Sequence record: MN453779.2
Reading direction: 5' to 3' (one strand)
Length of the DNA: 64,000 bases
Shown: positions 38,635-52,339 of the stretch, in pieces
How positions within the stretch are numbered: position 1 is the stretch's first letter
Layout of the letters: every line of letters starts with the position of its first letter
The notes under the pieces: model-generated
The model's input: the letters and a program-made list of their open reading frames with translations, nothing else
What the model was told of the DNA's origin: nothing
Database searches by the model: none
Made by a program: the position numbers and the translations under genes

Positions 38635-41600
38635 TTAATTCATCCTCACCCCACTTTGTTGTTTAGCGAGACGATTGATACCTTCATTCAGAGTATCGAC
38701 GGATGTGATCAACCTAGCCATTGCAGCTGTGTTGGCTTCATCGTTAACAGCCAGAGGACCGTCAGGTAACTTGAGTTCTACCGGAACTTCTTTGGTAGAT
38801 GTCTTCATTACATTAGACTGATTAACAGCAGGGGTATTAGTTGCTGTATTACTCGGTTGTTGCGGAGCAGCAATACTCGGTGGAGGAGCCGGTACCTTAG
38901 GCTTACTAGCAGGAGAAGCTGTAGGAGTACTAGTTGGTGAAACAGGTTTATTAGAAACCTTAGCAGTATCTGCCGCGTTCATCAAACTGTTGATGTCCTC
39001 CTTAGCATCTGGGTTAACAGCTTTGTTACCATCGACGTGATCAGGTGGAACATTACTATCTGGAACAGAAGGTAATTGGGCTTGTTCGTTACTAATCTGA
39101 ACAGAGCCCTGTTCACCAGTATCTGGTACAGATATATCTCCCCGGTTAAGACGATCCAAGTACTCTTGATAGTATTGCCTACGTTCATCTGAGCCAGGAA
39201 CGGGATTACCACCATTGATACCACGCATGGCGGTTTCAAAATCACCTGTCTGGGCAATAGAACGCATAGCTTTACTATTAAGTAAGAATCGTACAGCAGA
39301 TTCAGCCATTACGTTAGGATCTTCAGACACGATACGTGGATTGGATACAACATCAATCCCAGTTTCTTGTTTGAATTTCTCGTAGTTAGCCTTGCCTGTT
39401 AACTGGAACAGTCCTCTACCACGGTATAACCAACCGTCTTCCGGTTTAGTGTTACCAAGCGTCGGACCTTTGGGAGCTCTACCGTAAACGTACATGGCGC
39501 GTTCAGGCGGAGACATGGCTGCAACCTTTTCAGCTGTGGCCATATCAGGAATATTACGGAAGTACCTCTTCAGAGTAGGGGCAGACCAGTTGGTATTCTC
39601 TACAGTAGCTGAATAGTTCCCTGTTTCCTTCTTAGCCATAGCCAACGCAAGAGCCAACATCTTCTTATCAGTTACACCAGCTTTTAACAAGTGGTTTAAT
39701 AAGAGCTGTTCACCTTGAGCAGGATCCATCTTGATCCCTTTGTCATCACCTGCTAACTTCTGGAACTCTGGATTAAAAGTATCTGACCAACCAAGGTTTA
39801 CATTCCCGCCTTGTAAGTTGTAGTTAGTACCAAACCCAATACCGTTGTTATTACGACCATCGGCAGTAAATGAATTACCAGTTCCACCACCGTAAATACC
39901 AACATTACCAGCAGAGACATTTCGGTTTTTACCATACACTTTATCAAACAGTGCATTGGTATTAACCTGGACTTGGTTAGAGTCGATTTTACTTCCGTTT
40001 ACTTTCTCATCGTAAGTAAGTGAACGCTCATCTTCTAACTCAGGTTCTTTCAGTCTTGCTTTTGTGGCCTTAGCATCCAAAGACTTAAGATACTTCTCAA
40101 CACGATCAGGCCAGCTACCAGAATTGGAATTTTCAAATGGAGATACTTTCACATCCCATACTGACACTTCTTCTTGCTGATATATAACCCGAGTTTCTGA
40201 TAAGAATCTAGCCAACTTAGCTTTGTTGGTATCAGAGAGTGATCTCCAACCTTGCTTAGGTAGCTGATTACGGAGACGTTTCATTTCCTTAACGTATTGT
40301 TGTAATACAGGTAAGAAACGATTCTGGAACCACAGATGCCAGTTAGACTCACCATTAGTTGTTTCAATCCTAAATTGCGCTTTAAACAGATTAAATACTC
40401 TAGTAGGGTTACCACTAAAGACCGCTTCCGTTCCAAGCGTGTTAATCAGATCTTCACAATAACGTTCCAGTCTAAGTACGGCATCTACTCGCCAAGGCAT
40501 GTTGTCGATGTTACCATAAACACCTAAACGGACCATAGTAAATGGATCGATAGCTGTATTAGCATCTTTATGCAAATCAGAGATATCGATTTCTCTTACA
40601 GCTTGCGGTGTTTGGAACTTACGATCAACTTCTTCCTGAGCGAGTTTATTAGCTCGATCTCCAAAACTATTACTGAACCACCCTGCAAGACCGTCCGGAG
40701 TCTTTTCGTTGAGCACTCTGCTACGACGCTCTACATCTGTTTCTAGTTTGAACTCTTCTTCAGGAGTGGGGTATTTCTTACGAAGTTCTGACAGTAAAGA
40801 ACTAACCAAGTTCTCAGTCATCACTCGATTAAGAATACCTTCCCTTGGATCTATCTGAACTTGGACTTCATAAGGGAATGGATCCAAAGTACCCATAGAT
40901 GTTCTTACACGTTCACAGAGTAGTGTAACTTCATAGCTCTCTTTGCGGTCAAACTCGTTGATGTCACCATGTCTACCTACGGATACTGCTACAGCGTACA
41001 GCAAGAACACTGGTTTGAAACGTGCATTAAACCAAGTGTGAACTTGATCAAATGGAACACTATCTCCACCTTTAGCAAACTGCTGGAGGATCTGTGCAAC
41101 AGGAGCATTTTGGGTAAAACTTGCCCTGTTATTAGCAATAGCCAAATGAGGAATTAATGCTTGTTCCAACTTAGAGACACGTTTAGCCAAATTACCGTCA
41201 ATACTCTTGATACCGTACTGAGCATAACGAATGCGACGTTGTAGTGAATCAGGAATCTCTTTAGCGCTAACTCCACCAGCACCATCAATGTAAGCTTGTG
41301 CTTCACGACGGTCAGTAAAGAAGGTTCCGTCAGGAGCCCAGAATACACCCTTGTTATCGATAAAGTCACTAGCGGCTTTTGGTAACAAGAATTCCTTAGC
41401 TGTTTTCAAAGCAAGTGTAGGTAAGAAGAAATCAGAAGCAGTATCGACAACTTTCTCCATAGTAGTTAACTTTGGACCATTATCGTCTTTACCATCTTCG
41501 TACACATCTCCATCAGTGGGTTCATCTTCACCACCAAAGGCATCGGCTGCGTACATCCCGCCACCTACTACAGCACCAGTACCTAGTAAAGCAGCCAACA

Positions 41601-44600
41601 TCTTACCACGACCACCCAACTTGCCAAGCGCTCCACCGATCTTACCTCTTACCCCTCCTTTACCAGCACTACCTAATGCATCCCCTAAACCACCTGCTGC
41701 TGTTTTAGCCATGGTGGCTTTAGTCAGAGCAGTGAAACCCCACTTCATTAATTTGAAGATGGGAGAAGCTACACCCAACACTCCCGAGAACAACATACTA
41801 CCGATAGAAGCTAAGCGTTTTCCAGAGTTAACCAGAGAACCCATAATCAAACCACCTAAGGTTCCAATGGGATTCTTAATAAGACGCATGGCAAAATCAC
41901 CCATCCCTCCCATCAAGCTAAAGAGTTTACCGAAGATGCCTTGCTTTTCGGTTTTCTCTCCCTCTTTAGGTTCTTTCATTCCTTCAGCAATATCGATGAT
42001 GGAGTCCTGAACCTTTTCTTGTTTCTCTGCTTTCTCTTGACGGATCTTATCTTCCAGAGAGTTTAACCTCAAACCTTTAGTGATAGGCGACCCTATTGGA
42101 TCACTTTCACCATCAAAGTTATCTGGAATATCAATACCAAACTTCTGAGACAATATAGCATAGATACGATCTAAACGACGTTCAACACCACGGTTACTAC
42201 TTTGGCCTGGTTTACCACCTACAGAACCTTCTGTATCACTCTGTGGACGATTATAACCGAACTTACCTAAGATGGTATCAAGACCTGATCTAGCCAGTCC
42301 AGCGGCTGTTTCTGCTAATCCTGAAGCAGCACTACCTACAGCTCTTACTTTCTGACCAGTTGCTGTGATAAGACCTTGATCAAACTCAATTTGAGAGATA
42401 ACCTCATTCCCTTCACTGTCATAAACAGGTCCAGTTATTTCGTTCCATCCCCAAATAGGTTTAATAGAACCAGTGGTATCTTCAATTGAGTATTCACCTT
42501 CTTTGAACTTCACAGCTCTAAGTCTAGGAGTCTTCTCACCTTTCACATATACATCTTGCTGGTAAATGAGATTCTTACCCATCTCCATCACAGACTTAAT
42601 ACGTGTTAGTGGATCAACAAAGTTATAAGCACCAACTACGGCATCTTTGAGCTTAACAATGCCAGAGAGAACCACCGCTCTACCATCAGCACCAAAGATT
42701 TTACCACCTAACTCCTTAATAGTTATGGTAACCTTTTCAGCTGCATCAAAGATTGGACCTTTAATATCACGCCAAGTGTTTATCACACGACGTTTTACAG
42801 CATCGTAATAATCACCAGCTTTTAACTTAGATGACTTAAGAATCGGGTTGCCGTTCTCATCAAGAATATCTTCTTCATCAGAAGGTTCGTCACCTACCGC
42901 ATTCTCATTGTCAACCCTACCCCAATGTTGTACTAAAGCACCTAGAGCGACACCACCTACTCCAGCGGCTGCTGCTAGAATTGGATTTTGGATAAAATGA
43001 GAACTAACACCACCTAAAATAGAACCTAAGATTAATGGCTGGTTTTGCATAACCATTTCAAACCCTTTACCCAAGATATTAGTTGGGAGGATTTTCTTAA
43101 GTCTATTAATAACATCAAAGTTATAACGATCAGCTTGACGTTCCTCAGTTTCTGACTTGGCTTGCTTGTTAAACAATTTACCATCTTTAACAATAGTCAA
43201 AAGTTCTGTAAACAACGCATCCATATTAGAAGTTGAAGTTGCGATCTTATCAATGTTGGTAATTACTTCACCGGTATGTGTGTCAAAGTAAGCCTGTGGT
43301 CCCTTAGAACTTTCTGTATTAACTTTGGAAGTATTATCAACCAATCTGCTAAGCTGAGCTGACAAATCGCTTATGGAACTATTGAGTTCGTTAAACGTAT
43401 TGTTAGTAGAAGCTGAACCAGTTGGTGATTTAGGAACGATGAATCCACCTTTACCGTCACTAACAGGTTTCTTGGAAGTGGTATCGAACATACCCTTCAA
43501 TTGAGGGTTATTAGGGTTCTCCATGAACTGTCCCAACCTTTCGTGGAAAATGTCCATGTTAACTTTCTCTACCCCAGCTTCAGTGTAAATGACACCAAGA
43601 TCTCTAAGGAGTTGTTCATTACCAGTAGAACGAAGCATGTCGATGCGCTCTGCTACATTGGGGAAAAGTTCCTTCATGTTAGCAGCAGTGGCAGAAGCTA
43701 CGTTAAGGCGCTCGTTACCTTCATTACTACGCATGTCGGTCATGCGCTTAAGTTTATCAAAACCCTTAGCAGATTTAAACTCAGAAACATCTTGGTCATT
43801 AAGTCCAAAGTGACGTTTCATTACAGCATGGATTTCTTTTTGGTGAGCGCCAGAAACGTTAGGAATATCACCAAGATAATAGAATGGGTTAAACCCTTTC
43901 TCTTGATCGACATCTTTAGCGATCTGTTGGGCTAGCGCTTTTCTAGCACCAGCGCTAAGAGAACGCTCTGTATCCAGCCCGTCAACCATCTCCAAAGCTG
44001 CTTGAGCGTAACGACTAAAGTCTCCGTAAGGCATTAAATCAGCTTTAACAGAAATGCGCTTTTCAGAATCAGTTTGGAACTGACCACGCATATAGTTATA
44101 GCTTACACCTTCGATATTCTTTTCGCCAGTACGAATCCCTTCGGTGCTGGTTAAGATCCTACTAAGCAACCCTGGGATAACCTCATTGAGTGTGATATTG
44201 TTAGTCTCTTTCCAGATACCTGGATTATTGAGATCTTTTACATTACGTTTATTAAGGGTATATTGAGTGCCACGAGATTTAGTAATCTCTGACATGAAGC
44301 TGTTAACGGAAGCTTTAGCTTTGTTGGTGGCTGCATTCTTAGCAACCCAAATAGCCTTTGGAATAGGTTTCTTACCAGGAGGAAGTTGATCTAAGTAATC
44401 TTGATAATCAAGATACTCCATCTCGTCCATAGCTTCGTAATCTTCAGCAAGGTAGTTAATTAACCCAACACCAGAAGTAGAAGCGTAAGAAGCTTTATTA
44501 CCAAAGTTAGTCAATTTGCCAAACATTTCTTGGAACTGCTTAGCTTCTTTGGGATTTTTAGCTGCTAGCTTATTAATCCAATCTTTACCTTTACCACGTT

Positions 44601-45690
44601 CAAAGAAGTAAGGAATATTGGAAACGAACATACTACCGAGTTGTTTGCCGATTAGATCACCAATCATCCCTTTGGACATCGGCATTCCATCTGACATGTC
44701 TAACATATCAGCAATTTGTTCTAAAGCAAAATTACCACCTTGATAACCTTCTTGTCTAGCCGACTTACCAAACTTATCCTTAATTAAACCAGTGAGTCCA
44801 CCTACACGTTTACCTATTGTGCTAAAAAGCTTATTTCTCATAAACTCTTTAGAAGCAGTAAAGTTGGACGTCTTTTGGTAATCGCTCATCATACTTGCTT
44901 TTTGAATCTTTTTCAATTCAGCAATTTCAGTATGAATTCCTTTCTCCATAAACTTATAGTACTTGACGTTAGAAACGTAAGTTTTAGCTAATAAAGAAAG
45001 CTTAGCCTGATCCATTCGAAGTTGGACGTTACGTTGGTAGTTAACCAGATCACGCATTCCAGATTCGATGTTAACGAGTTGTCTATTACCAGAAGAGATA
45101 CTCGCGGTGATCATCCCGCCAACATGAGCAGACATGGTATTTAATGTTTCACCTAAAGCTGTGAACATTCCTTCTTGAGCTTCAAGAGAGCGATCAAGCG
45201 CAGCAGCAACATCGTAGTCACTAGTTTCTTCTATAGCTAAACCAGGAGCTTCATAACCACCTAATTTCTCCCAACTAGAAAAGTCTTTCTGGGAGAAATT
45301 CTCGAGCTCATTTGTAATTGAACTGGGCATTCTTTCGCCCATTTTCTTTGACAGATGACCCGCAATGCTTTGTAACGATTTAACAGAAGAAGCATTTTCT
45401 TCTTTAAATTCTGTTTTTAATTCGTCAAATCTACGACCAGCCCAGCTGACCCGATCTAACGCTGTGGAGAATGATTTAGGAAGAATAGTACGAAGTGTTC
45501 GCATTCTTGCTTCGCCACTTCCAACTGTTTCATCGACAATCCCAGAAAGGAATCCGGAGGCCATCCCTCCGACAAACCCTTTCTTTGCATACGGATCCAT
45601 ATCAAAATCCATATCAAAGTCGAGATCTCCACCAAAGGGATCATCATCCCAGTCTAGATCATAAGTATCACTTGCCATACATTCCCCCAC
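38635..45690 (-). CDS. Giant tail / tape-measure protein with GH19 peptidoglycan hydrolase (phiKZ gp181-like)
   Basis: 2351 aa; GH19 motifs KKETG, DGWLYRGRGLFQLTGKANY, INGG near the C-terminus; divergent from the RNAP genes. Confidence 0.85.
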   Translation of the reverse strand: MGECMASDTYDLDWDDDPFGGDLDFDMDFDMDPYAKKGFVGGMASGFLSGIVDETVGSGEARMRTLRTILPKSFSTALDRVSWAGRRFDELKTEFKEENASSVKSLQSIAGHLSKKMGERMPSSITNELENFSQKDFSSWEKLGGYEAPGLAIEETSDYDVAAALDRSLEAQEGMFTALGETLNTMSAHVGGMITASISSGNRQLVNIESGMRDLVNYQRNVQLRMDQAKLSLLAKTYVSNVKYYKFMEKGIHTEIAELKKIQKASMMSDYQKTSNFTASKEFMRNKLFSTIGKRVGGLTGLIKDKFGKSARQEGYQGGNFALEQIADMLDMSDGMPMSKGMIGDLIGKQLGSMFVSNIPYFFERGKGKDWINKLAAKNPKEAKQFQEMFGKLTNFGNKASYASTSGVGLINYLAEDYEAMDEMEYLDYQDYLDQLPPGKKPIPKAIWVAKNAATNKAKASVNSFMSEITKSRGTQYTLNKRNVKDLNNPGIWKETNNITLNEVIPGLLSRILTSTEGIRTGEKNIEGVSYNYMRGQFQTDSEKRISVKADLMPYGDFSRYAQAALEMVDGLDTERSLSAGARKALAQQIAKDVDQEKGFNPFYYLGDIPNVSGAHQKEIHAVMKRHFGLNDQDVSEFKSAKGFDKLKRMTDMRSNEGNERLNVASATAANMKELFPNVAERIDMLRSTGNEQLLRDLGVIYTEAGVEKVNMDIFHERLGQFMENPNNPQLKGMFDTTSKKPVSDGKGGFIVPKSPTGSASTNNTFNELNSSISDLSAQLSRLVDNTSKVNTESSKGPQAYFDTHTGEVITNIDKIATSTSNMDALFTELLTIVKDGKLFNKQAKSETEERQADRYNFDVINRLKKILPTNILGKGFEMVMQNQPLILGSILGGVSSHFIQNPILAAAAGVGGVALGALVQHWGRVDNENAVGDEPSDEEDILDENGNPILKSSKLKAGDYYDAVKRRVINTWRDIKGPIFDAAEKVTITIKELGGKIFGADGRAVVLSGIVKLKDAVVGAYNFVDPLTRIKSVMEMGKNLIYQQDVYVKGEKTPRLRAVKFKEGEYSIEDTTGSIKPIWGWNEITGPVYDSEGNEVISQIEFDQGLITATGQKVRAVGSAASGLAETAAGLARSGLDTILGKFGYNRPQSDTEGSVGGKPGQSSNRGVERRLDRIYAILSQKFGIDIPDNFDGESDPIGSPITKGLRLNSLEDKIRQEKAEKQEKVQDSIIDIAEGMKEPKEGEKTEKQGIFGKLFSLMGGMGDFAMRLIKNPIGTLGGLIMGSLVNSGKRLASIGSMLFSGVLGVASPIFKLMKWGFTALTKATMAKTAAGGLGDALGSAGKGGVRGKIGGALGKLGGRGKMLAALLGTGAVVGGGMYAADAFGGEDEPTDGDVYEDGKDDNGPKLTTMEKVVDTASDFFLPTLALKTAKEFLLPKAASDFIDNKGVFWAPDGTFFTDRREAQAYIDGAGGVSAKEIPDSLQRRIRYAQYGIKSIDGNLAKRVSKLEQALIPHLAIANNRASFTQNAPVAQILQQFAKGGDSVPFDQVHTWFNARFKPVFLLYAVAVSVGRHGDINEFDRKESYEVTLLCERVRTSMGTLDPFPYEVQVQIDPREGILNRVMTENLVSSLLSELRKKYPTPEEEFKLETDVERRSRVLNEKTPDGLAGWFSNSFGDRANKLAQEEVDRKFQTPQAVREIDISDLHKDANTAIDPFTMVRLGVYGNIDNMPWRVDAVLRLERYCEDLINTLGTEAVFSGNPTRVFNLFKAQFRIETTNGESNWHLWFQNRFLPVLQQYVKEMKRLRNQLPKQGWRSLSDTNKAKLARFLSETRVIYQQEEVSVWDVKVSPFENSNSGSWPDRVEKYLKSLDAKATKARLKEPELEDERSLTYDEKVNGSKIDSNQVQVNTNALFDKVYGKNRNVSAGNVGIYGGGTGNSFTADGRNNNGIGFGTNYNLQGGNVNLGWSDTFNPEFQKLAGDDKGIKMDPAQGEQLLLNHLLKAGVTDKKMLALALAMAKKETGNYSATVENTNWSAPTLKRYFRNIPDMATAEKVAAMSPPERAMYVYGRAPKGPTLGNTKPEDGWLYRGRGLFQLTGKANYEKFKQETGIDVVSNPRIVSEDPNVMAESAVRFLLNSKAMRSIAQTGDFETAMRGINGGNPVPGSDERRQYYQEYLDRLNRGDISVPDTGEQGSVQISNEQAQLPSVPDSNVPPDHVDGNKAVNPDAKEDINSLMNAADTAKVSNKPVSPTSTPTASPASKPKVPAPPPSIAAPQQPSNTATNTPAVNQSNVMKTSTKEVPVELKLPDGPLAVNDEANTAAMARLITSVDTLNEGINRLAKQQSGVRMN

Positions 45691-45703: not shown

Positions 45704-47581
45704 ATGAGTAGACAACCTACTAACTTTACGCTGCTTGATCCTAAAACGTTTCCAATAGAACTCATGTCACCCGTGACAGTAGCAGATTCGTTTGAAGGTC
45801 AAACCACTAACTTACACGAAGACGGACTCTACTCGACCAGGATCTTTGGTCGAGTAGGTACTGATGAACGAGATAAAACCGAATCTTACATTAATTCCTT
45901 ATTGCCCATTTTCAATCCCACGTATTTTAAAGCATTAGTGCAGTTAAAATCACTTTACTTAGATATAGTAAAGGGTAAGGCATATGCTGTATGGGATGAG
46001 ACAGAACGTGATTTCATAAAATCTAACGTCCTGGAAGGCGATACAGGATTTGCGTTTTTTATGACTCATTTTGGTGAATTAGATCCAAAACCAAATCAGT
46101 CTTTTAAACGAACTCAGAAGATCACTTTGGTTAATAATTTCCGTGATCGAGCTTTGAATAAACACATTCCAGTTATTCCGGCGGGGATCCGAGACATTGA
46201 AATCGGACCTACTGGATTAGTTACTGAAAATGAGATTAACGATCTTTATCGTAAATTGATTTTCCGTACTAAGTCACTGACTACCAAGAACCCTGATCCA
46301 CTTGATCCAGTTTATGATAATATTCACTGGGGAATGCAGGAGTCTTTGAACAACATTGACCAACATCTCTTTGAGTTACAGGAGGGTAAACGAGGTTTCA
46401 TGCAGCGTCGAATGAGCCGACGTTCTATCCACTCTGCAACTCGTAACGTGATCGTCTCTCGTAAAGTCTCTGTAGAGAATATGGATGATAATGTCACTGG
46501 CGATCCTAACTCCACTTTTATTGGGATGTACCAAGCACTACTTGGCTATAACCTAGTTGCTACACACGAACTTCTTAACGGTTTCTTATCTGAAGTATTT
46601 ACTCCTGGTTTGGATAAAGCACGTCTAGTGGAACCTAAGAGTTTAGAGAGTGCTTATGTGGATGTAGATCCCTACACAGTAGATAAGTTTACTTCTGCCG
46701 ATGGAATTGGTAAACTCTTTAATGGGTTTAGTGACCCCAATGTTCGTAACCGTCCTATTAAGGTAGCTGGTCATTACTTAGGTTTACTTTATGACGATGG
46801 TAAAAACGTTTGCTTAGTTCATGATGTAAATGACCTAGGTGAAGGAATGGATAAGAAGTATCTCCATCCTGTTACCTATATGCAATTCTTTTATATCCAG
46901 ACCGTAAAAGCAATTGAAAAGAAGATGTTACAAATTACTCGTTACCCAATTACTGGGATAGGATCCATTGTACCTACACGAGTGTTTGTTCTTCCAACTA
47001 CAGCCACGTCAGAATCAAGAACATTGATTGACATCGATGGTAGTAAGTTGGATAGTTTTCACTTCTTTCCAGTGTGGACTAAAAATCCCAGTTACTTTGA
47101 TGGGATGAGTATTAGTAACGTACGCTTAGCAGCTGCTGGTGGTGACTTCGACGGTATTTCTGTTTGCCGCTTTTAGTAGTAATACTAATCGAATAAGTGC
47201 GGAATAAAGCAAGGAATCTCTCCATTTAGAGATAACTTGAACCGAAGGCTTACTGTAAATGGTAAGTCAGGGGCAGAGCGTAGATAGTGAACCTCTTTCA
47301 TTAAAGAGAATATAATCTATCCAAGAGGCCGCACCATCCTACTGGGATGAAAACGTACGCCGATACCCGGAGCGATCTGGGAGTGAAGATAAAAAACTTC
47401 ACATTAACATTTGGACCAACTATCAGCCAACAGCATTCAAGCTAAAGATTCAGTAGAAGAAATTGAGACTTTGTTTGGTAAACGTATATTCTATATTTCT
47501 GGAGCAGGTGACTTCCTATATGACCCTGTACAGGAACCACACGCGTTCCTTTTACGTTCATTGACCAATGGATTATCGTAA
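45704..47581 (+). CDS. rpoC: Virion RNA polymerase beta-prime catalytic subunit (phiKZ gp180-like); spliced join(45704..47155,47414..47581), 539 aa
   Basis: LHEDGLYSTRIFG, EGKRGF, RYP; catalytic GGDFDG|DQ restored by removing the intron; exon 2 is open to TAA 47579-47581. Confidence 0.92.
47156..47413 (+). mobile_element. Group I intron (258 nt, no ORF) in the DFDGD motif
   Basis: 5-prime exon ends in U, intron ends in G; P1 CGGU/GCCG; P3 GTGCGG 47197/CCGCAC 47329; P7 GCGTA 47278/TACGC 47356; P8, P9 (GCGA loop), P9.1. Confidence 0.92.
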
Positions 47582-50500
47582 TGCAAGAACATCCAGTAAA
47601 CTTTGACGAACTTAGCGGGCTAGAGGGTTTGTTATACTCTCAGTTCGTTAAACTACATGGTACACGAGAACGTGCTAATGATGTAGTGAATCCACGATAT
47701 CAAGTAGTCGGTGATATCATGTTACCTCGTAACAGTCTCATTCATTACCAGGGAAATATTCCTGGTGAATTGGGACCTAGTAACACCGCTGCTTTTATTA
47801 GTAACTATGACAAACGTATTAACATCTTTTTTAATGTTAAGTACGAAACACCTTTGGGAACAACTAAGATTGTTCCTATTCAGTTGACTAAGTTGATCAA
47901 GCAATATGAGGGTGGACATTACCTTTATACCCGTGCTCGTCAATACCAAACTGTAATTCACAAAGAAGGTGAATTACTGGTCAACAACTTAGCCATTGGT
48001 AAGATCCCTGTTCAGTATCGCAGACAAACTGTATTTACCCCATTCCAACGTTCCTATAATGAACTTTACACATTAATGGAGTCAGTGAATGAGTTTAGTC
48101 AATACGATATTCATCAGTTTGTAGAGTTTAAACTTCCACGTTCTTTCCCTTCTTATAAAACGTTAGAACTTAAATTTGAAAAGTATAAACGTTTCTTTAA
48201 TAGTGAAGGTGTTATTGAGAAATACGAGAAGGAAGCTCTAAAAGAATTCCAGGCCGAAGAGTCTTTCTGGCTATTAGATCTATTTGGTATTCTGATTGGT
48301 TTTGAGAATAAACAATACAGTTTGTTTAATCGATTGAATGACCGAGCTAGAAGTCAACTAGAATTGATCTTTAGTTATAACGGTGTGTGTTGGATTGCTA
48401 ATCTTCAAACACTGATCAATTTGATTGGGTACGATGATAAACCAGAAGACACTTCTCCCCGTCCTATTAAGTTTAACTACTTCAAGCGTTTCTACCTTGC
48501 TTTGATTTCTCTGGTGAGTCCGCTTTCTGAAGAAGTTGTGGAAGATAGCTATGACCAACCAGAAGAAACCGCCAAAGAAGAGGTGGTGGCAGATCGATCG
48601 GAAAAAGGAGAGAGAGGATCTGGACGAGAGTCTGAAAACAAGTCCCCTCTGGTACCTAGCACTACTCCTGGCGGCTTGGCTGATCTTTATGCCAGCAGTA
48701 AGGGAACTACTCCTGCGGTGTCTGATACCCCAGGAGCAAAAGGAGAGAAGACTACTGAAGGAACACTTCCTGGGGATTCCGAATCCGAGAATGACCCAGC
48801 ATCAGCTGAAAACTCTGGTAATTCCCCGGAAGAAGAATGGGGTGCGGACATAGACGATAGTGTCTTTGAACGCGCCAGCATCGAACAAGCCACCATAGTT
48901 AACTCTGAAGAAGCTTATTCGCCAGTTAGCACGATCAATCGCATTCTGGAACGTAAGGCAGCCAGGGGACAATTAACAACCAAAGAGAAAGAGTATTACA
49001 CTAACGCAAGTGTTTCTTATTTGGACATTGAGTTTGGTGGTAGACTTCTAGCTGAGATTGTTGATATCAAACCTGAAGACTTGGTGATGAAACCTAAAGC
49101 GTTTGCACCTAAGTCGGAAGCTGTTACAGATGAGTCTGTATTGCGTTCTAGAAGCATGGAACTCACTAATGGATATGTAGAACAATTCCTTGAACGAGAT
49201 ATCATGGGAGCGGTTCTTGCTGTTCAGAACGGCGGCACTGCTTTACTGGATCTAAACCGTGAAACTATTATCACTGCTGATTCCAAGTACGACGTTTACA
49301 AAATGAAACTTCAGCCTGTGGATAACGGCAATCAGTCTACTAGACAGTTCCGTTTACCTAAGGTAGCATCTGACGGTAGTTTTACTATCAACGGGGTTAA
49401 ATCTTACGCTCAGTTGGTCCGTATGGATCTTCCGGTTAGAAAGATCAATCCGGTTAAGGTAGCCATTAGTTCTTATTACGATAAGAAACTGATGATTGAA
49501 CGTTCTGCTTATAAAGTAGACGATTACAATCATTGGCTTAAGACTAATATCATCCAGAAGAGTTATGAAGATAAATCCATTACAGTTAAATTAGGTTCAT
49601 TCAAATCTGAGCTTAAAGAAGTGTGCTGGTATTACTCGGTATTAGCTTCTCGCTTTAAAGAGATTACTGTTGGTGGTTTGGAATTTAACTTTGATACTGA
49701 ATCTATTTTGGTGAAACACCCTAAATGGAAAAAGTATTGTAAAGGTGAAAGCTGGGTCATTGGTGATGAACACGGAGTTCCTGTACTAATCGATAACAGC
49801 GGTTTGGTAATGATCGATGGTGTAGAGAAAGGTTATATCGAAGAGATCCTTCGGTTACCTATGGCTAAAGCTCCAGTCCCTACTGCAACTGCGAACATTA
49901 ACGGATATAAATTCCCTGTAGTGGTGGTTCTTGCTTACTGGATCGGTTTTAGCGAACTAGTGAAACGCCTCAAACCCACTCATCGCGTTGTTGAACCAGG
50001 TACTCGCCCTATGCTTAATGCTAATGAGTATATTGTTCAGTTTGCTGATGAGCGTTTGATTCTTGACCGTCGAGATGGATTGAGTACTTTGATCTTCTCA
50101 GGACTGAGAAAGCTAGATGGTTTAGCAAACTTCTCCAAGGCTCAATTGGATGATCCTAACGTATGGTTCAGCTTGATTAATGATAGTCGTGTTAAACCAT
50201 CTCATTTTAAAGAGATGGATTTGATTTACGATATGTTTATTGATCCCATCACTGCTCGTGAATTGGAACGTCGTGGTTATCCTCTCATTATGGATAAACT
50301 AATCATCCGGGCCGTAGAAATGCTTCTTAACAACGAAGCAGAACACGAAGTAGAGATTGCTGAACAACGTTTGGTTGGTTTCGAGAGATTCCCTGGTCAC
50401 GTCTATCGTGAACTTGTTAAGTCTACCAGGCAGTTTAGGAACAAACCTAATACTGGTAAGAAGACCTTTGACTTAAACCCAGAAGCTATCATGATGAATA

Positions 50501-52339
50501 TCCTGACTGATAGCAGTATGCAACCAGTTGAAGAAGTCAATCCAGTCCATCAACTGAAACAGCAAGAAGAAGTTACGTTTGGCGGGACCTTTGGTCGAAG
50601 TGATCAAGCAATGGTACGTCGCACACGTGGTCAATTACCAAGTTACGCAGGGATCATCTCTGAAGCTGGTAAGGACTCAGGTAAAGTAGGATTTATCTCT
50701 TATCTAACTTCTGATGCCAAGATTGTTGACTATGCTGGTAACGTGGATGTGACCCAAGAAACCACCAATGCAGGTCGTGGTTCTGTAACGGCTAACTTAC
50801 TTTATGGTACAACACGCGATGACAGTAAAAGGTAAACACAGCGTCGACGACTTCGACGTTACTGCCCTTACACTTAGAAATGAGTGTTTGCATTAACCCT
50901 TAATTGCTGGGAAGTACTCAAAGATGCTCTTACCGAAACGGAAACCGAAAGGTTATATGGAAAGGTTTGAAAAGTAGAGCGGAGAGACAGTCAGCAGCGG
51001 AGCGTCTAAGTATATTCGTGATGAATAGATATGACGAGCGTTCAACGACTAGGGGTGAAACTCCCCGTAGCTGGAACAAGGAATGTTCCTACCAAACAGG
51101 GTTACCTTACTGTGTTGCTGAAGAAGCAACTAGACAGTTGGTTGAAATATAGTCTGCTCCTTATAGTGATATAGGGCGGGTGCTAGGTATCGCACCGGGT
51201 CTTAGGATAAGACTGGACATAAGGCGTTGTTCTCAGGTGTTCAGCTAAGTCAATGGATGGCTACTGATAGTTACGTTGCTAACCCTATTAGAACTCCTTC
51301 TGATAGCGTAGTAGCTTATCGTAACTCAGAACTCTATTGTTCTTATGCTAAAGAAGTGGGAACTATTACTGCTATCACTCCTGACGGGATGACTGTTAAG
51401 TATGATAATGGTAGTGAAGAGAAATTCCCACTTGGCTATGAAGTAGGTAAAGGTGCTGGTGAGTATCACAAACATCTTAAAATCACCGATATGAAAGTTG
51501 GTGACAAAGTTGAGAAAGGTGATGTACTTGCTTGGGATGATTGCTTCTACACTCGGGATTTAACCAATCCAAAACGGATTGTTATTAAGCTTGGGACAAT
51601 GGCTCGTATTGCATTGGTAGAAGATCAATTTACCTTTGAGGATTCCATTGGGATTACTCAGAAGTACGCAGATCTTAATACCACGCCATATCTCAAAAAC
51701 AATGAGTTTAGAATAGGTTATGAACAAGCCATTAAACTCTATGTCAAAGTTGGGGATAAGGTAGAATACGATCAAATATTAGCTGATGTGATGGATCCTT
51801 CTTCTGCCATGTTTGAAGAGGAAAGTGTTAATTCCATTGCTGGTTTGGATCGTCTTGGTATTAAACAGATCAAAGCTAAACAAGCTGGTATAATCACTAA
51901 GATCGATGTTATCTATAACGGTGACTTAGATACGGCAGAAGAGTCTTTGAAAACATTCATTCAGGAACAAGATAAGCTACGTGCTAAGAAAGCTAAGTTC
52001 AGAGAACTTGCTGCTACTAATGGGAACGTTGGTGGTAACACATCAGTAGGTAAGTCAAAGGTCTATCCCAATACAGCAGCAGTAACTATTACCATCGAGA
52101 GTAAACTCACCACCACAACTGCTGATAAGTTTGTAGCGGGTAACCAGATGAAAGGTACAGTAGGGTTTATTTACCCAGATCCTATTTATACTGTTGATGG
52201 TCGGGAAGTTGATGTTAAGTTCTCTTTGAAGTCTTTGCTTAACCGAATGGTATTAAGTCTTCGTGATAAACTGGTAGCTAATGAGTTGAACCATGTTTAC
52301 ACTAGTCGTATGATGAAAAAATATGGGAGATATGAATAA
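47581..52339 (+). CDS. rpoB: Virion RNA polymerase beta subunit, large piece (phiKZ gp178-like); spliced join(47581..50833,51225..52339), 1455 aa
   Basis: FTINGVK, NPV, RTRGQLPSYAGII, DSGKVG, RDDSKR|SLFSGVQ, FTFEDSI, DKFVAGNQMKG. Confidence 0.9.
50834..51224 (+). mobile_element. Group IA intron (391 nt, no ORF) in the RNAP beta gene
   Basis: P AATTGCTGGGAA 50902, Q CAGTCAGCAG 50988, R GTTCAACGACTAG 51040, S AAATATAGTC 51145; P3 AACCCT/AGGGTT; U|...G| junction restores the frame. Confidence 0.92.

Follow-up and report, generated by a model that had tools for sequence, protein, structure and literature searches.

The locus considered here raises the question of why the reading frame of a phage RNA polymerase (RNAP) gene should stop inside the Mg-binding loop of the protein it encodes. 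It lies in a stretch of 64,000 nucleotides from sequence record MN453779.2 (the whole of which is referred to as the window), and the part spanning positions 45704-47600 is 100% identical to Aeromonas phages PS1 and PS2; going by the coordinates of this match, the window represents the final 64 kb of the PS1 record. According to the list of open reading frames (ORFs), the frame 45704..47176 on the + strand terminates in ...AAAGGDFDG-ISVCRF, which is then followed by three stop codons. As argued below, the segment that separates this DFDG from the remainder of the gene (47156-47413) is very probably a compact, ORF-less group I intron of Twort-like IA-type architecture, which possesses a variant P7 helix and behaves as a mobile element at the DNA level.

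Repair of the interrupted RNAP gene by joining

A join of T47155 to G47414 preserves the frame and yields ...GGDFDGDQLSANS..., made up of 484 + 55 codons and ending with a stop codon at 47579-47581, while the translation across the 47155/47414 join reads ...GGDFDGDQLSANSIQAK... and runs on for the 55 further codons. Removal of the 258 nt restores GGDFDGDQLSAN in the PS1 virion RNAP gene, and the NADFDGD-type catalytic loop is then present as GGDFDGD. An initial annotation of this locus had reported both the ending GGDFDG-ISVCRF and the in-frame restoration of DFDGD by this join, and both were confirmed by translation.

The protein family to which the two pieces belong provides a second view of the same junction. 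The 490-aa product of the interrupted frame matches PHROG 2986 (‘RNA polymerase beta subunit’) with an E value of 2.6e-176 over profile positions 6-487, the match stopping at residue 484, i.e. the G of DFDG, and the 55-aa piece, searched separately, matches positions 488-539 of the same profile (E 1.4e-8). As the pieces abut at positions 487/488 of PHROG 2986, they correspond to exact neighbours in uninterrupted members of the family. The 490-aa piece furthermore resembles the beta' chains in the solved structures of the phage AR9 RNAP (7S00/7S01; E 7e-7), where SGDYDG lies opposite GGDFDG, and homologues carry the annotation ‘virion-associated RNA polymerase beta' subunit’; in Pfam, neither of the two exon products nor the RNAP protein encoded downstream had a match at E<=0.1. 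Judged by sequence similarity, the interrupted gene encodes beta'-N of the multisubunit RNAP predicted to be packaged in the virions of phage PS1/PS2.

An uninterrupted version of the gene is found in the Aeromonas phages AVP1 and pAEv1810, which are ~95% identical to PS1 in this region and in which a single coding sequence (CDS) of 1620 nt specifies 539 aa. When these are aligned against the window, the gap is exactly 47156-47413, or 258 nt, and the junction reads GGA|GAT, as compared to GGT| in every interrupted allele, the final T of which provides the U that has to precede a group I 5' splice site. The boundaries of the insert are thus set in two independent ways, by the gap in the intron-less alleles and by the abutment within PHROG 2986. 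The insert was found in six genomes (PS1, PS2, ACP1, ZPAH34, CF8 and AhC3_1), representing five distinct copies of 255-258 nt since PS1 and PS2 are the same here; each copy is preceded by T and ends in G, and in all five its excision restores GGDFDGDQLSAN.

In GenBank, exon 2 is covered by PS1_0228, a 56-aa ‘hypothetical protein’ that starts from TTG 47411. The earlier statement that 55 downstream codons had been missed therefore holds for the ORF beginning at 45704, from which they are absent, but not for GenBank, where they appear as PS1_0228. Exon 2 is given as a separate ‘hypothetical protein’ (with TTG or another start) in the annotations of PS1, PS2, ACP1 and CF8, and is unannotated in ZPAH34 and AhC3_1. 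These two CDSs, together with the known division of jumbo-phage RNAP subunits among several genes, might be taken to mean that no splicing occurs, and that the gene is naturally divided into polypeptides of 490 and 56 aa, is a pseudogene, or is read by ribosomal bypassing. Such an explanation is barely credible: the split would fall within the Mg-binding loop, no Shine-Dalgarno-like sequence was found upstream of TTG 47411, the empty sites are exact, and the 258 nt form a conserved, covarying RNA structure (see below) rather than a spacer. Bypassing in T4 gene 60 covers a gap of 50 nt, far below the 258 nt present here, and as matching take-off and landing codons are not found either, bypassing was rejected as an explanation of the insert. 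Also rejected were an intein, for which the insert is too short and full of stop codons, and a group II intron, for which it is too short and of the wrong structure. A register shifted by one base (GG|T...TT|GGAC) would retain Gly-Asp, but was discarded since it places a G at -1 and a U at the end of the insert, which violates the rules for group I introns, and conflicts with P1.

Structure and covariation of the 258-nt insert

The secondary structure of the insert was assessed on an alignment (A1) of the five distinct Aeromonas copies with 10-nt exon flanks, copies whose exons diverge by ~27% across the intron-bearing phages. The structure has 69 pairs and shows standard pairing in 99.4% of 342 cells, against 32-42% in slid controls where the 3' partners were moved by 1-3 columns; changes on both sides of a pair occur at 20 pairs in A1 versus 2-3 in the slid controls, and none of 500 shuffles attained the observed values of pairing and covariation. 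RNAalifold, run blind, recovered all helices except the pseudoknotted P7, and the minimum free energy of the PS1 intron as a single sequence corresponds to a z-score of -2.9. Positions of the helices are compiled in Table 1.

Table 1. Coordinates of the interrupted RNAP gene, of the insert and its helices, and of the neighbouring intron within the window.
Feature	Position	Strand	Remarks
Exon 1	45704..47155	+	484 codons; from ORF list; PHROG 2986 profile 6-487
Recoded exon tract, -12..-1 and +1..+27	47143..47440	+	wholly silent
Group I intron, ORF-less	47156..47413	+	258 nt; exact empty sites, structure, covariation, model R1
P1, exon CGGU + intron A (47152-47156) / UGCCG (47165-47169)	47152..47169	+	100% paired and invariant in five copies
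P2, 6 bp, GUAA tetraloop	47173..47188	+	double-sided changes at 4/6 pairs in five copies
P3 5' strand GUGCGG (partner CCGCAC, 47329-47334)	47197..47202	+	invariant in Aeromonas set; covaries family-wide
P4, 47210-13/47236-39; P5, 47217-21/47228-32	within 47210..47271	+	covary at family level
P6, 47242-43/47270-71; P6a, 47247-53/47262-68	within 47210..47271	+	covary at family level
P7 5' strand, G-(A bulge)-GCGUA	47276..47282	+	partner UACGCC, 47356-47361
P7.1/P7.1a hairpin between P7 and P3'	47283..47321	+	compensatory substitutions; candidate subgroup IA-type insertion
P3 3' strand, 47329-34, then directly P8 hairpin, 47335-39/47345-49	47329..47349	+	covariation
P7 3' strand UACGCC	47356..47361	+	family covariation
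P9, GCGA-capped	47366-71/47376-81	+	4 compensatory pairs
P9.1	47383-88/47397-402	+	2 compensatory pairs
3' tail AUUAACAUUUG, terminal omega-G 47413	within 47366..47413	+	GAUAAAAA(R)C and UAACA blocks family-conserved
Exon 2	47414..47581	+	55 codons DQLSANS...NGLS + stop; PHROG 2986 profile 488-539
Second group I intron, ORF-less	50834..51224	+	391 nt; canonical P/Q/R/S core; RF00028 35.5 bits, E 2e-7

Within P1 the wobble U47155.G47166 marks the 5' splice site, with U at -1, and at the opposite end all five Aeromonas copies, as well as a copy from a Raoultella phage introduced below, finish with the omega-G. The P7.1 region forms one composite covarying hairpin instead of the two separate P7.1/P7.2 hairpins looked for in IA2-like introns, and in ZPAH34 and CF8 it exhibits the compensatory loss of one base pair. 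P7 reads GCAUA/UAUGC in AhC3_1 versus GCGUA/UACGC in PS1, and the three variants encountered (GCGUA/UACGC, GCAUA/UAUGC and GAGUA/UACUC) all keep the pairing; G47278-C47360, located beside the bulged A47277, is the proposed guanosine-binding pair.

The initial annotation had placed a 258-nt group I intron at 47156-47413, and had listed a P1 with U.G pair, a GUAA-capped P2, P3, P7, P8, P9, P9.1 and a terminal G, as well as a P7 that would represent a compensatory variant preserving the G-C pair. The first of these proposals is borne out by the exact empty sites, the PHROG abutment and the covarying structure, the listed elements are kept in the five diverged copies, and the view taken of P7 agrees with its three paired variants and with the G-C pair next to the bulge. 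Assignment of the insert to the group I introns is strongly supported.

All three frames of the intron contain stop codons, the first in-frame stop being intron codon 7 in PS1 and lying 2-9 codons into the intron across all copies. In none of the Aeromonas copies do the two exons enclose an ORF, which leaves these copies without an intron-encoded homing endonuclease. As we envisage it, the pre-mRNA would fold into the P1-P9.1 structure with its P3/P7 pseudoknot, upon which exogenous guanosine, held at the P7 pair G47278-C47360, would attack after U47155; the terminal G47413 would next occupy the guanosine site and the exons would be ligated. The spliced mRNA would then specify a 539-aa protein with an intact Mg-binding loop GGDFDGD, and unspliced RNA would be translated only as far as the stop seven codons into the intron.

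Relatives of the intron and its departures from the canonical core

A covariance model (R1), for which nothing but the five Aeromonas copies was used and in which P7 was not paired, picked up relatives of full length in the phages VB_ZK_P1 of Raoultella (140 bits), CB457P1 of Enterocloster (113 bits), LIS04 of Listeria (105 bits) and BpSp of Bacillus (72 bits). An exact search of IMG/VR with a 44-nt core returned no matches, and a degenerate core pattern, by which the 3' strand of P7 is not constrained, drew 51 IMG/VR contigs; altogether R1 matches 66 sites, equivalent to 62 distinct sequences, with scores across the family of 72-151 bits. In the alignment of these 62 sequences 96.2% of the pairing is retained and 65/69 pairs covary, with P3 being 100% paired and showing covariation at all six of its pairs. 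P7, unpaired in the model, is nonetheless 98.5% paired in the family, where three of its six pairs covary, the variant is GC(R)UA/UA(Y)GC, and 54 of 55 sequences have G-C as the pair adjoining the bulge, which is what a guanosine-binding pair should show. The family shares the blocks AGGGGCA(R)(M)GC(R)UAG, GAAUAUAAU, CCA(M)GAG, GAAAA..UA(Y)GC, GAUAAAAA(R)C and GAUAACA. In several IMG/VR contigs (L020, L022, L059, L060, L061 and L063) two family copies lie close together. Of 13 loci of the family that were scanned, not one has its family member detected by RF00028, although this model finds other, canonical introns in the same loci at 64-94 bits. These matches delineate a family of at least 60 predicted compact phage group I introns that share the variant P7 and are invisible to RF00028.

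Most members of this AR9/PBS1-type family (Raoultella, Enterocloster, Listeria, BpSp and IMG/VR copies) reside in other genes, such as gyrA, near the terminase gene and elsewhere, and some possess large insertions or an adjoining endonuclease ORF, unlike PS1; among these members the Raoultella copy alone is inserted at DFDG|D, as in PS1. In Listeria phage LIS04 (1537-2680) the family member is positioned directly 3' of an ‘endonuclease’ CDS, among intein/Hint fragments beside the large terminase gene. This copy could represent a family member that carries an ORF and, as such, a lead to the type of mobilising nuclease.

Two known sets of introns could be compared with the insert. In 50 kb of Staphylococcus phage Twort, R1 matches exactly three places (E 5e-12, 3e-8 and 4e-5; none else at E<=1), each of them a group I intron that RF00028 detects as well, with scores of 64-101 bits; the three introns are adjacent and situated in the gap after TwortORF106. 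We take them to be the orf142 introns, of subgroup IA2 and self-splicing, with orf142-I2 presumably being the one of known crystal structure. The Twort and Aeromonas introns have in common a length of ~250 nt, the lack of an ORF, P1, the GUAA-capped P2, J2/3 GAAAA, P9.1 and the UAACA 3' tail, and align along their full length; they differ in P7, which is of the canonical GACUA/UAGUC type in Twort, whereas the Aeromonas copies have GCGUA/UACGC and receive no RF00028 score. The second set is that of the Bacillus jumbo phage AR9 (AR9/PBS1), in which gyrA is annotated as a three-piece join and where both gyrA introns match R1 (102 and 91 bits) and are members of the family, with P7 reading GCAUA/UAUGC in the same architecture. 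The sequences of mature AR9 mRNAs are stated to have been experimentally determined (bioRxiv 10.1101/2020.12.14.422802).

As regards the host gene, the occurrence of group I introns in jumbo-phage RNAP genes, invoked in the initial annotation as known, is indeed documented and frequent (PMC11620839; PMC12350094 Fig. 5A; bioRxiv 10.1101/2020.12.14.422802). Published introns of the virion RNAP beta' N-terminal subunit (PMC12350094 Fig. 5A; bioRxiv 10.1101/2020.12.14.422802) interrupt the same gene class and are self-splicing, but carry homing endonuclease genes, in contrast to the ORF-less PS1 intron. The papers found on Aeromonas jumbo phages make no mention of introns, and a look for virion proteomics of these phages yielded none.

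Several points weigh against the intron reading and have to be set beside this evidence. Rfam 15 gave no match to the insert, either at the gathering threshold in a scan of the whole window or at E<=10 in the 601-nt slice 47000-47600. The C-G pair above the guanosine-binding pair is unusual, since Twort and the canonical introns scanned read GACUA/UAGUC at this point, P4 has 4 bp only, and P10, evaluated by eye, appears weak (<=3 bp, in 3/5 copies). Splicing, like its chemistry and the mechanism of mobility, is something that we infer from sequence, and the experimental support for splicing with this type of P7 is second-hand, coming from AR9 (bioRxiv 10.1101/2020.12.14.422802). Finally, no homing endonuclease was identified, the PS1 genome not having been searched for a trans-acting one.

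Where the missing Rfam match is concerned, the same kind of scan detects a neighbouring canonical intron at 35.5 bits, and intron variants of phages are reported to go undetected by Rfam and GISSD models at times (PMC11878797); the suggestion made at the outset that a divergent core could evade standard models agrees with the Infernal-type Rfam scan being unmatched even at E<=10. The unusual P7, the short P4 and the weak P10 might alternatively signify a group I-derived intron that requires a phage or host protein cofactor, or one that splices poorly and leaves the gene partly crippled. We consider this improbable, as exon divergence of ~27% has left all helices and core blocks strongly conserved, with compensatory change only, the essential gene is intact in six phage genomes, and the family is large and widespread. 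For an intron that splices, the C-G found in place of A-U above the guanosine-binding pair would be a natural ribozyme variant worth study.

Patchy distribution, recoded flanks and neighbouring introns

Among the 220 homologue records, most of those in the matches listed are uninterrupted, and the intron is likewise patchily present among close relatives. Exon sequences on either side of the insertion site differ between the two states: from -12 to +27, nearly every codon is silently different between the Ferozepurvirus alleles of intron-plus (PS1, ACP1) and intron-minus phages (AVP1, pAEv1810), the protein being identical across this tract. Between PS1 and AVP1, 14 of its 39 sites differ, versus 76/1580 elsewhere in the gene (Fisher p=4.8e-9), and many of the intron-plus nucleotide states agree with Chaoshanvirus alleles. 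The tract looks like the product of co-conversion from a divergent donor or, equivalently, like a recoded target resistant to a nuclease.

Silent flanks and patchy presence together indicate a mobile selfish element of the homing type. The intron would target the most conserved codons of the gene, and would have arrived together with a short, foreign and silent stretch of exon by co-conversion. Because it encodes no protein, a nuclease provided in trans or general recombination during co-infection would be needed. A mobile intron, that of PhiPA3 gp210, has also been described in the gene of the virion RNAP beta subunit, where it follows a conserved DD (Birkholz et al. 2024, PMC11620839), and in both PhiPA3 and PS1 a group I intron of a chimallivirus virion-RNAP gene is inserted at invariant codons of the catalytic region, with evidence of homing-type behaviour. 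The PhiPA3 intron differs in that it occupies the beta-like subunit (the homologue of PhiKZ gp178) and encodes an HNH nicking endonuclease.

A variant of this view holds that the ORF-less intron and its recoded flanks are kept as immunity, in that they would destroy the target of trans-acting homing nucleases of competing chimalliviruses, while ribosome-free splicing in the phage nucleus would make the intron tolerable. Interference competition has been shown for PhiPA3 against PhiKZ. We regard this variant as unlikely, if conceivable.

A further proposal, made in the initial annotation, is that the ribozyme acts as a regulatory gate, such that controlled splicing times or limits the production of active virion RNAP. 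Its premise was that unspliced mRNA gives a dead enzyme: the truncated protein does lack the last of the three catalytic Asp as well as the C-terminal 55 residues, and to expect inactivity from this is sound reasoning, its loss of activity being a deduction. There is more to be said in its favour, as adjacent virion RNAP genes hold two introns, the literature discusses phage introns whose splicing depends on conditions (PMC10914365), and splicing would be uncoupled from translation in a nucleus-forming phage; the genus Ferozepurvirus is placed in the Chimalliviridae, nucleus-forming jumbo phages, and chimallin has been reported in the related phage ZPAH34 (PMC10321303). However, the intron is dispensable because AVP1 and pAEv1810, sister phages that are ~95% identical here, do without it, ACP1 has this intron and not the second one, most homologues among the matches listed are uninterrupted, the recoded flanks speak for a recent acquisition by horizontal transfer, and no sensor-like element or other feature suggesting regulated splicing was found at the PS1 intron. 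The gate is thus highly improbable and this part of the initial annotation is not supported. Interpreted as a mobile intron, the insert belongs to a divergent-core family and adds a new, unannotated case to mobile elements of a known kind, and is not a new kind of regulator.

The second intron of the region (Table 1) splits the adjacent virion RNAP beta-like gene after ...RDDSKR, the exons being 47581-50833 and 51225-52339, and its removal results in 1455 aa, equal to the length in AVP1. It is also present in CF8, and absent from AVP1, ACP1 and ZPAH34. It is the neighbouring intron referred to above, whose RF00028 score is below the gathering score of 50 and which is likewise unannotated. The two RNAP genes of PS1 are entered as four CDSs (PS1_0227 to PS1_0229 plus the CDS that comes next), the positions concerned being 47411-47581 and 51227-52339. 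Neither of the PS1 introns contains an ORF, and the insertion site of the PhiPA3 intron is a few codons from this second intron (...RDDSKR|), not from the one at DFDGD.

Other phages have introns in the DFDGD region as well. In VB_ZK_P1 (PV662128.1, 2047-2734) a mini-exon of 12 nt, GATTTTGACGGT (DFDG), lies between two different group I introns: intron A (2047-2411), at NA|DFDG, has a canonical core and scores 63.8 bits with RF00028, and intron B (2424-2734), at DFDG|D, is the relative of the PS1 intron that scores 140 bits with R1, the joined reading being ...KTFNA|DFDG|DTMY.... In the orthologous beta'-N gene of Klebsiella phage phiKp_32 (~906-1284) a canonical intron is inserted at DFD|GD (RF00028 37.5 bits), and in that of Vibrio phage VP4B (~904-1397) one is inserted at DYDGD|Q (RF00028 51.2 bits). 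R1 gave no match to the introns at these neighbouring positions in VP4B and phiKp_32, and since both have canonical cores, introns that share a site need not be of one family. Insertions are thus concentrated at the DFDGD codons, a hot-spot with four insertion points in or beside five codons and two intron families. Such a concentration accords with the notion that homing elements are directed at codons which cannot change.

Upstream of the interrupted RNAP gene and head-to-head with it is a 2351-aa ORF on the - strand (38635-45690), designated ‘putative endolysin’ in relatives. The layout of endolysin and RNAP genes in the window presumably resembles the gp181/gp180/gp178 region of PhiKZ.

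For the phages concerned, it follows from the intron reading that the annotations of PS1, PS2, ACP1, CF8, ZPAH34 and AhC3_1 give a truncated RNAP subunit, where the real product would be a single 539-aa subunit with an intact catalytic loop, and that the next RNAP gene in PS1 and CF8 needs a like correction. For the family, phage intron surveys that rely on RF00028 undercount, and the alignments produced in this analysis could seed a new intron model. The intron-plus and intron-minus sister phages, in turn, would constitute a natural test system for intron-mediated competition among nucleus-forming phages.

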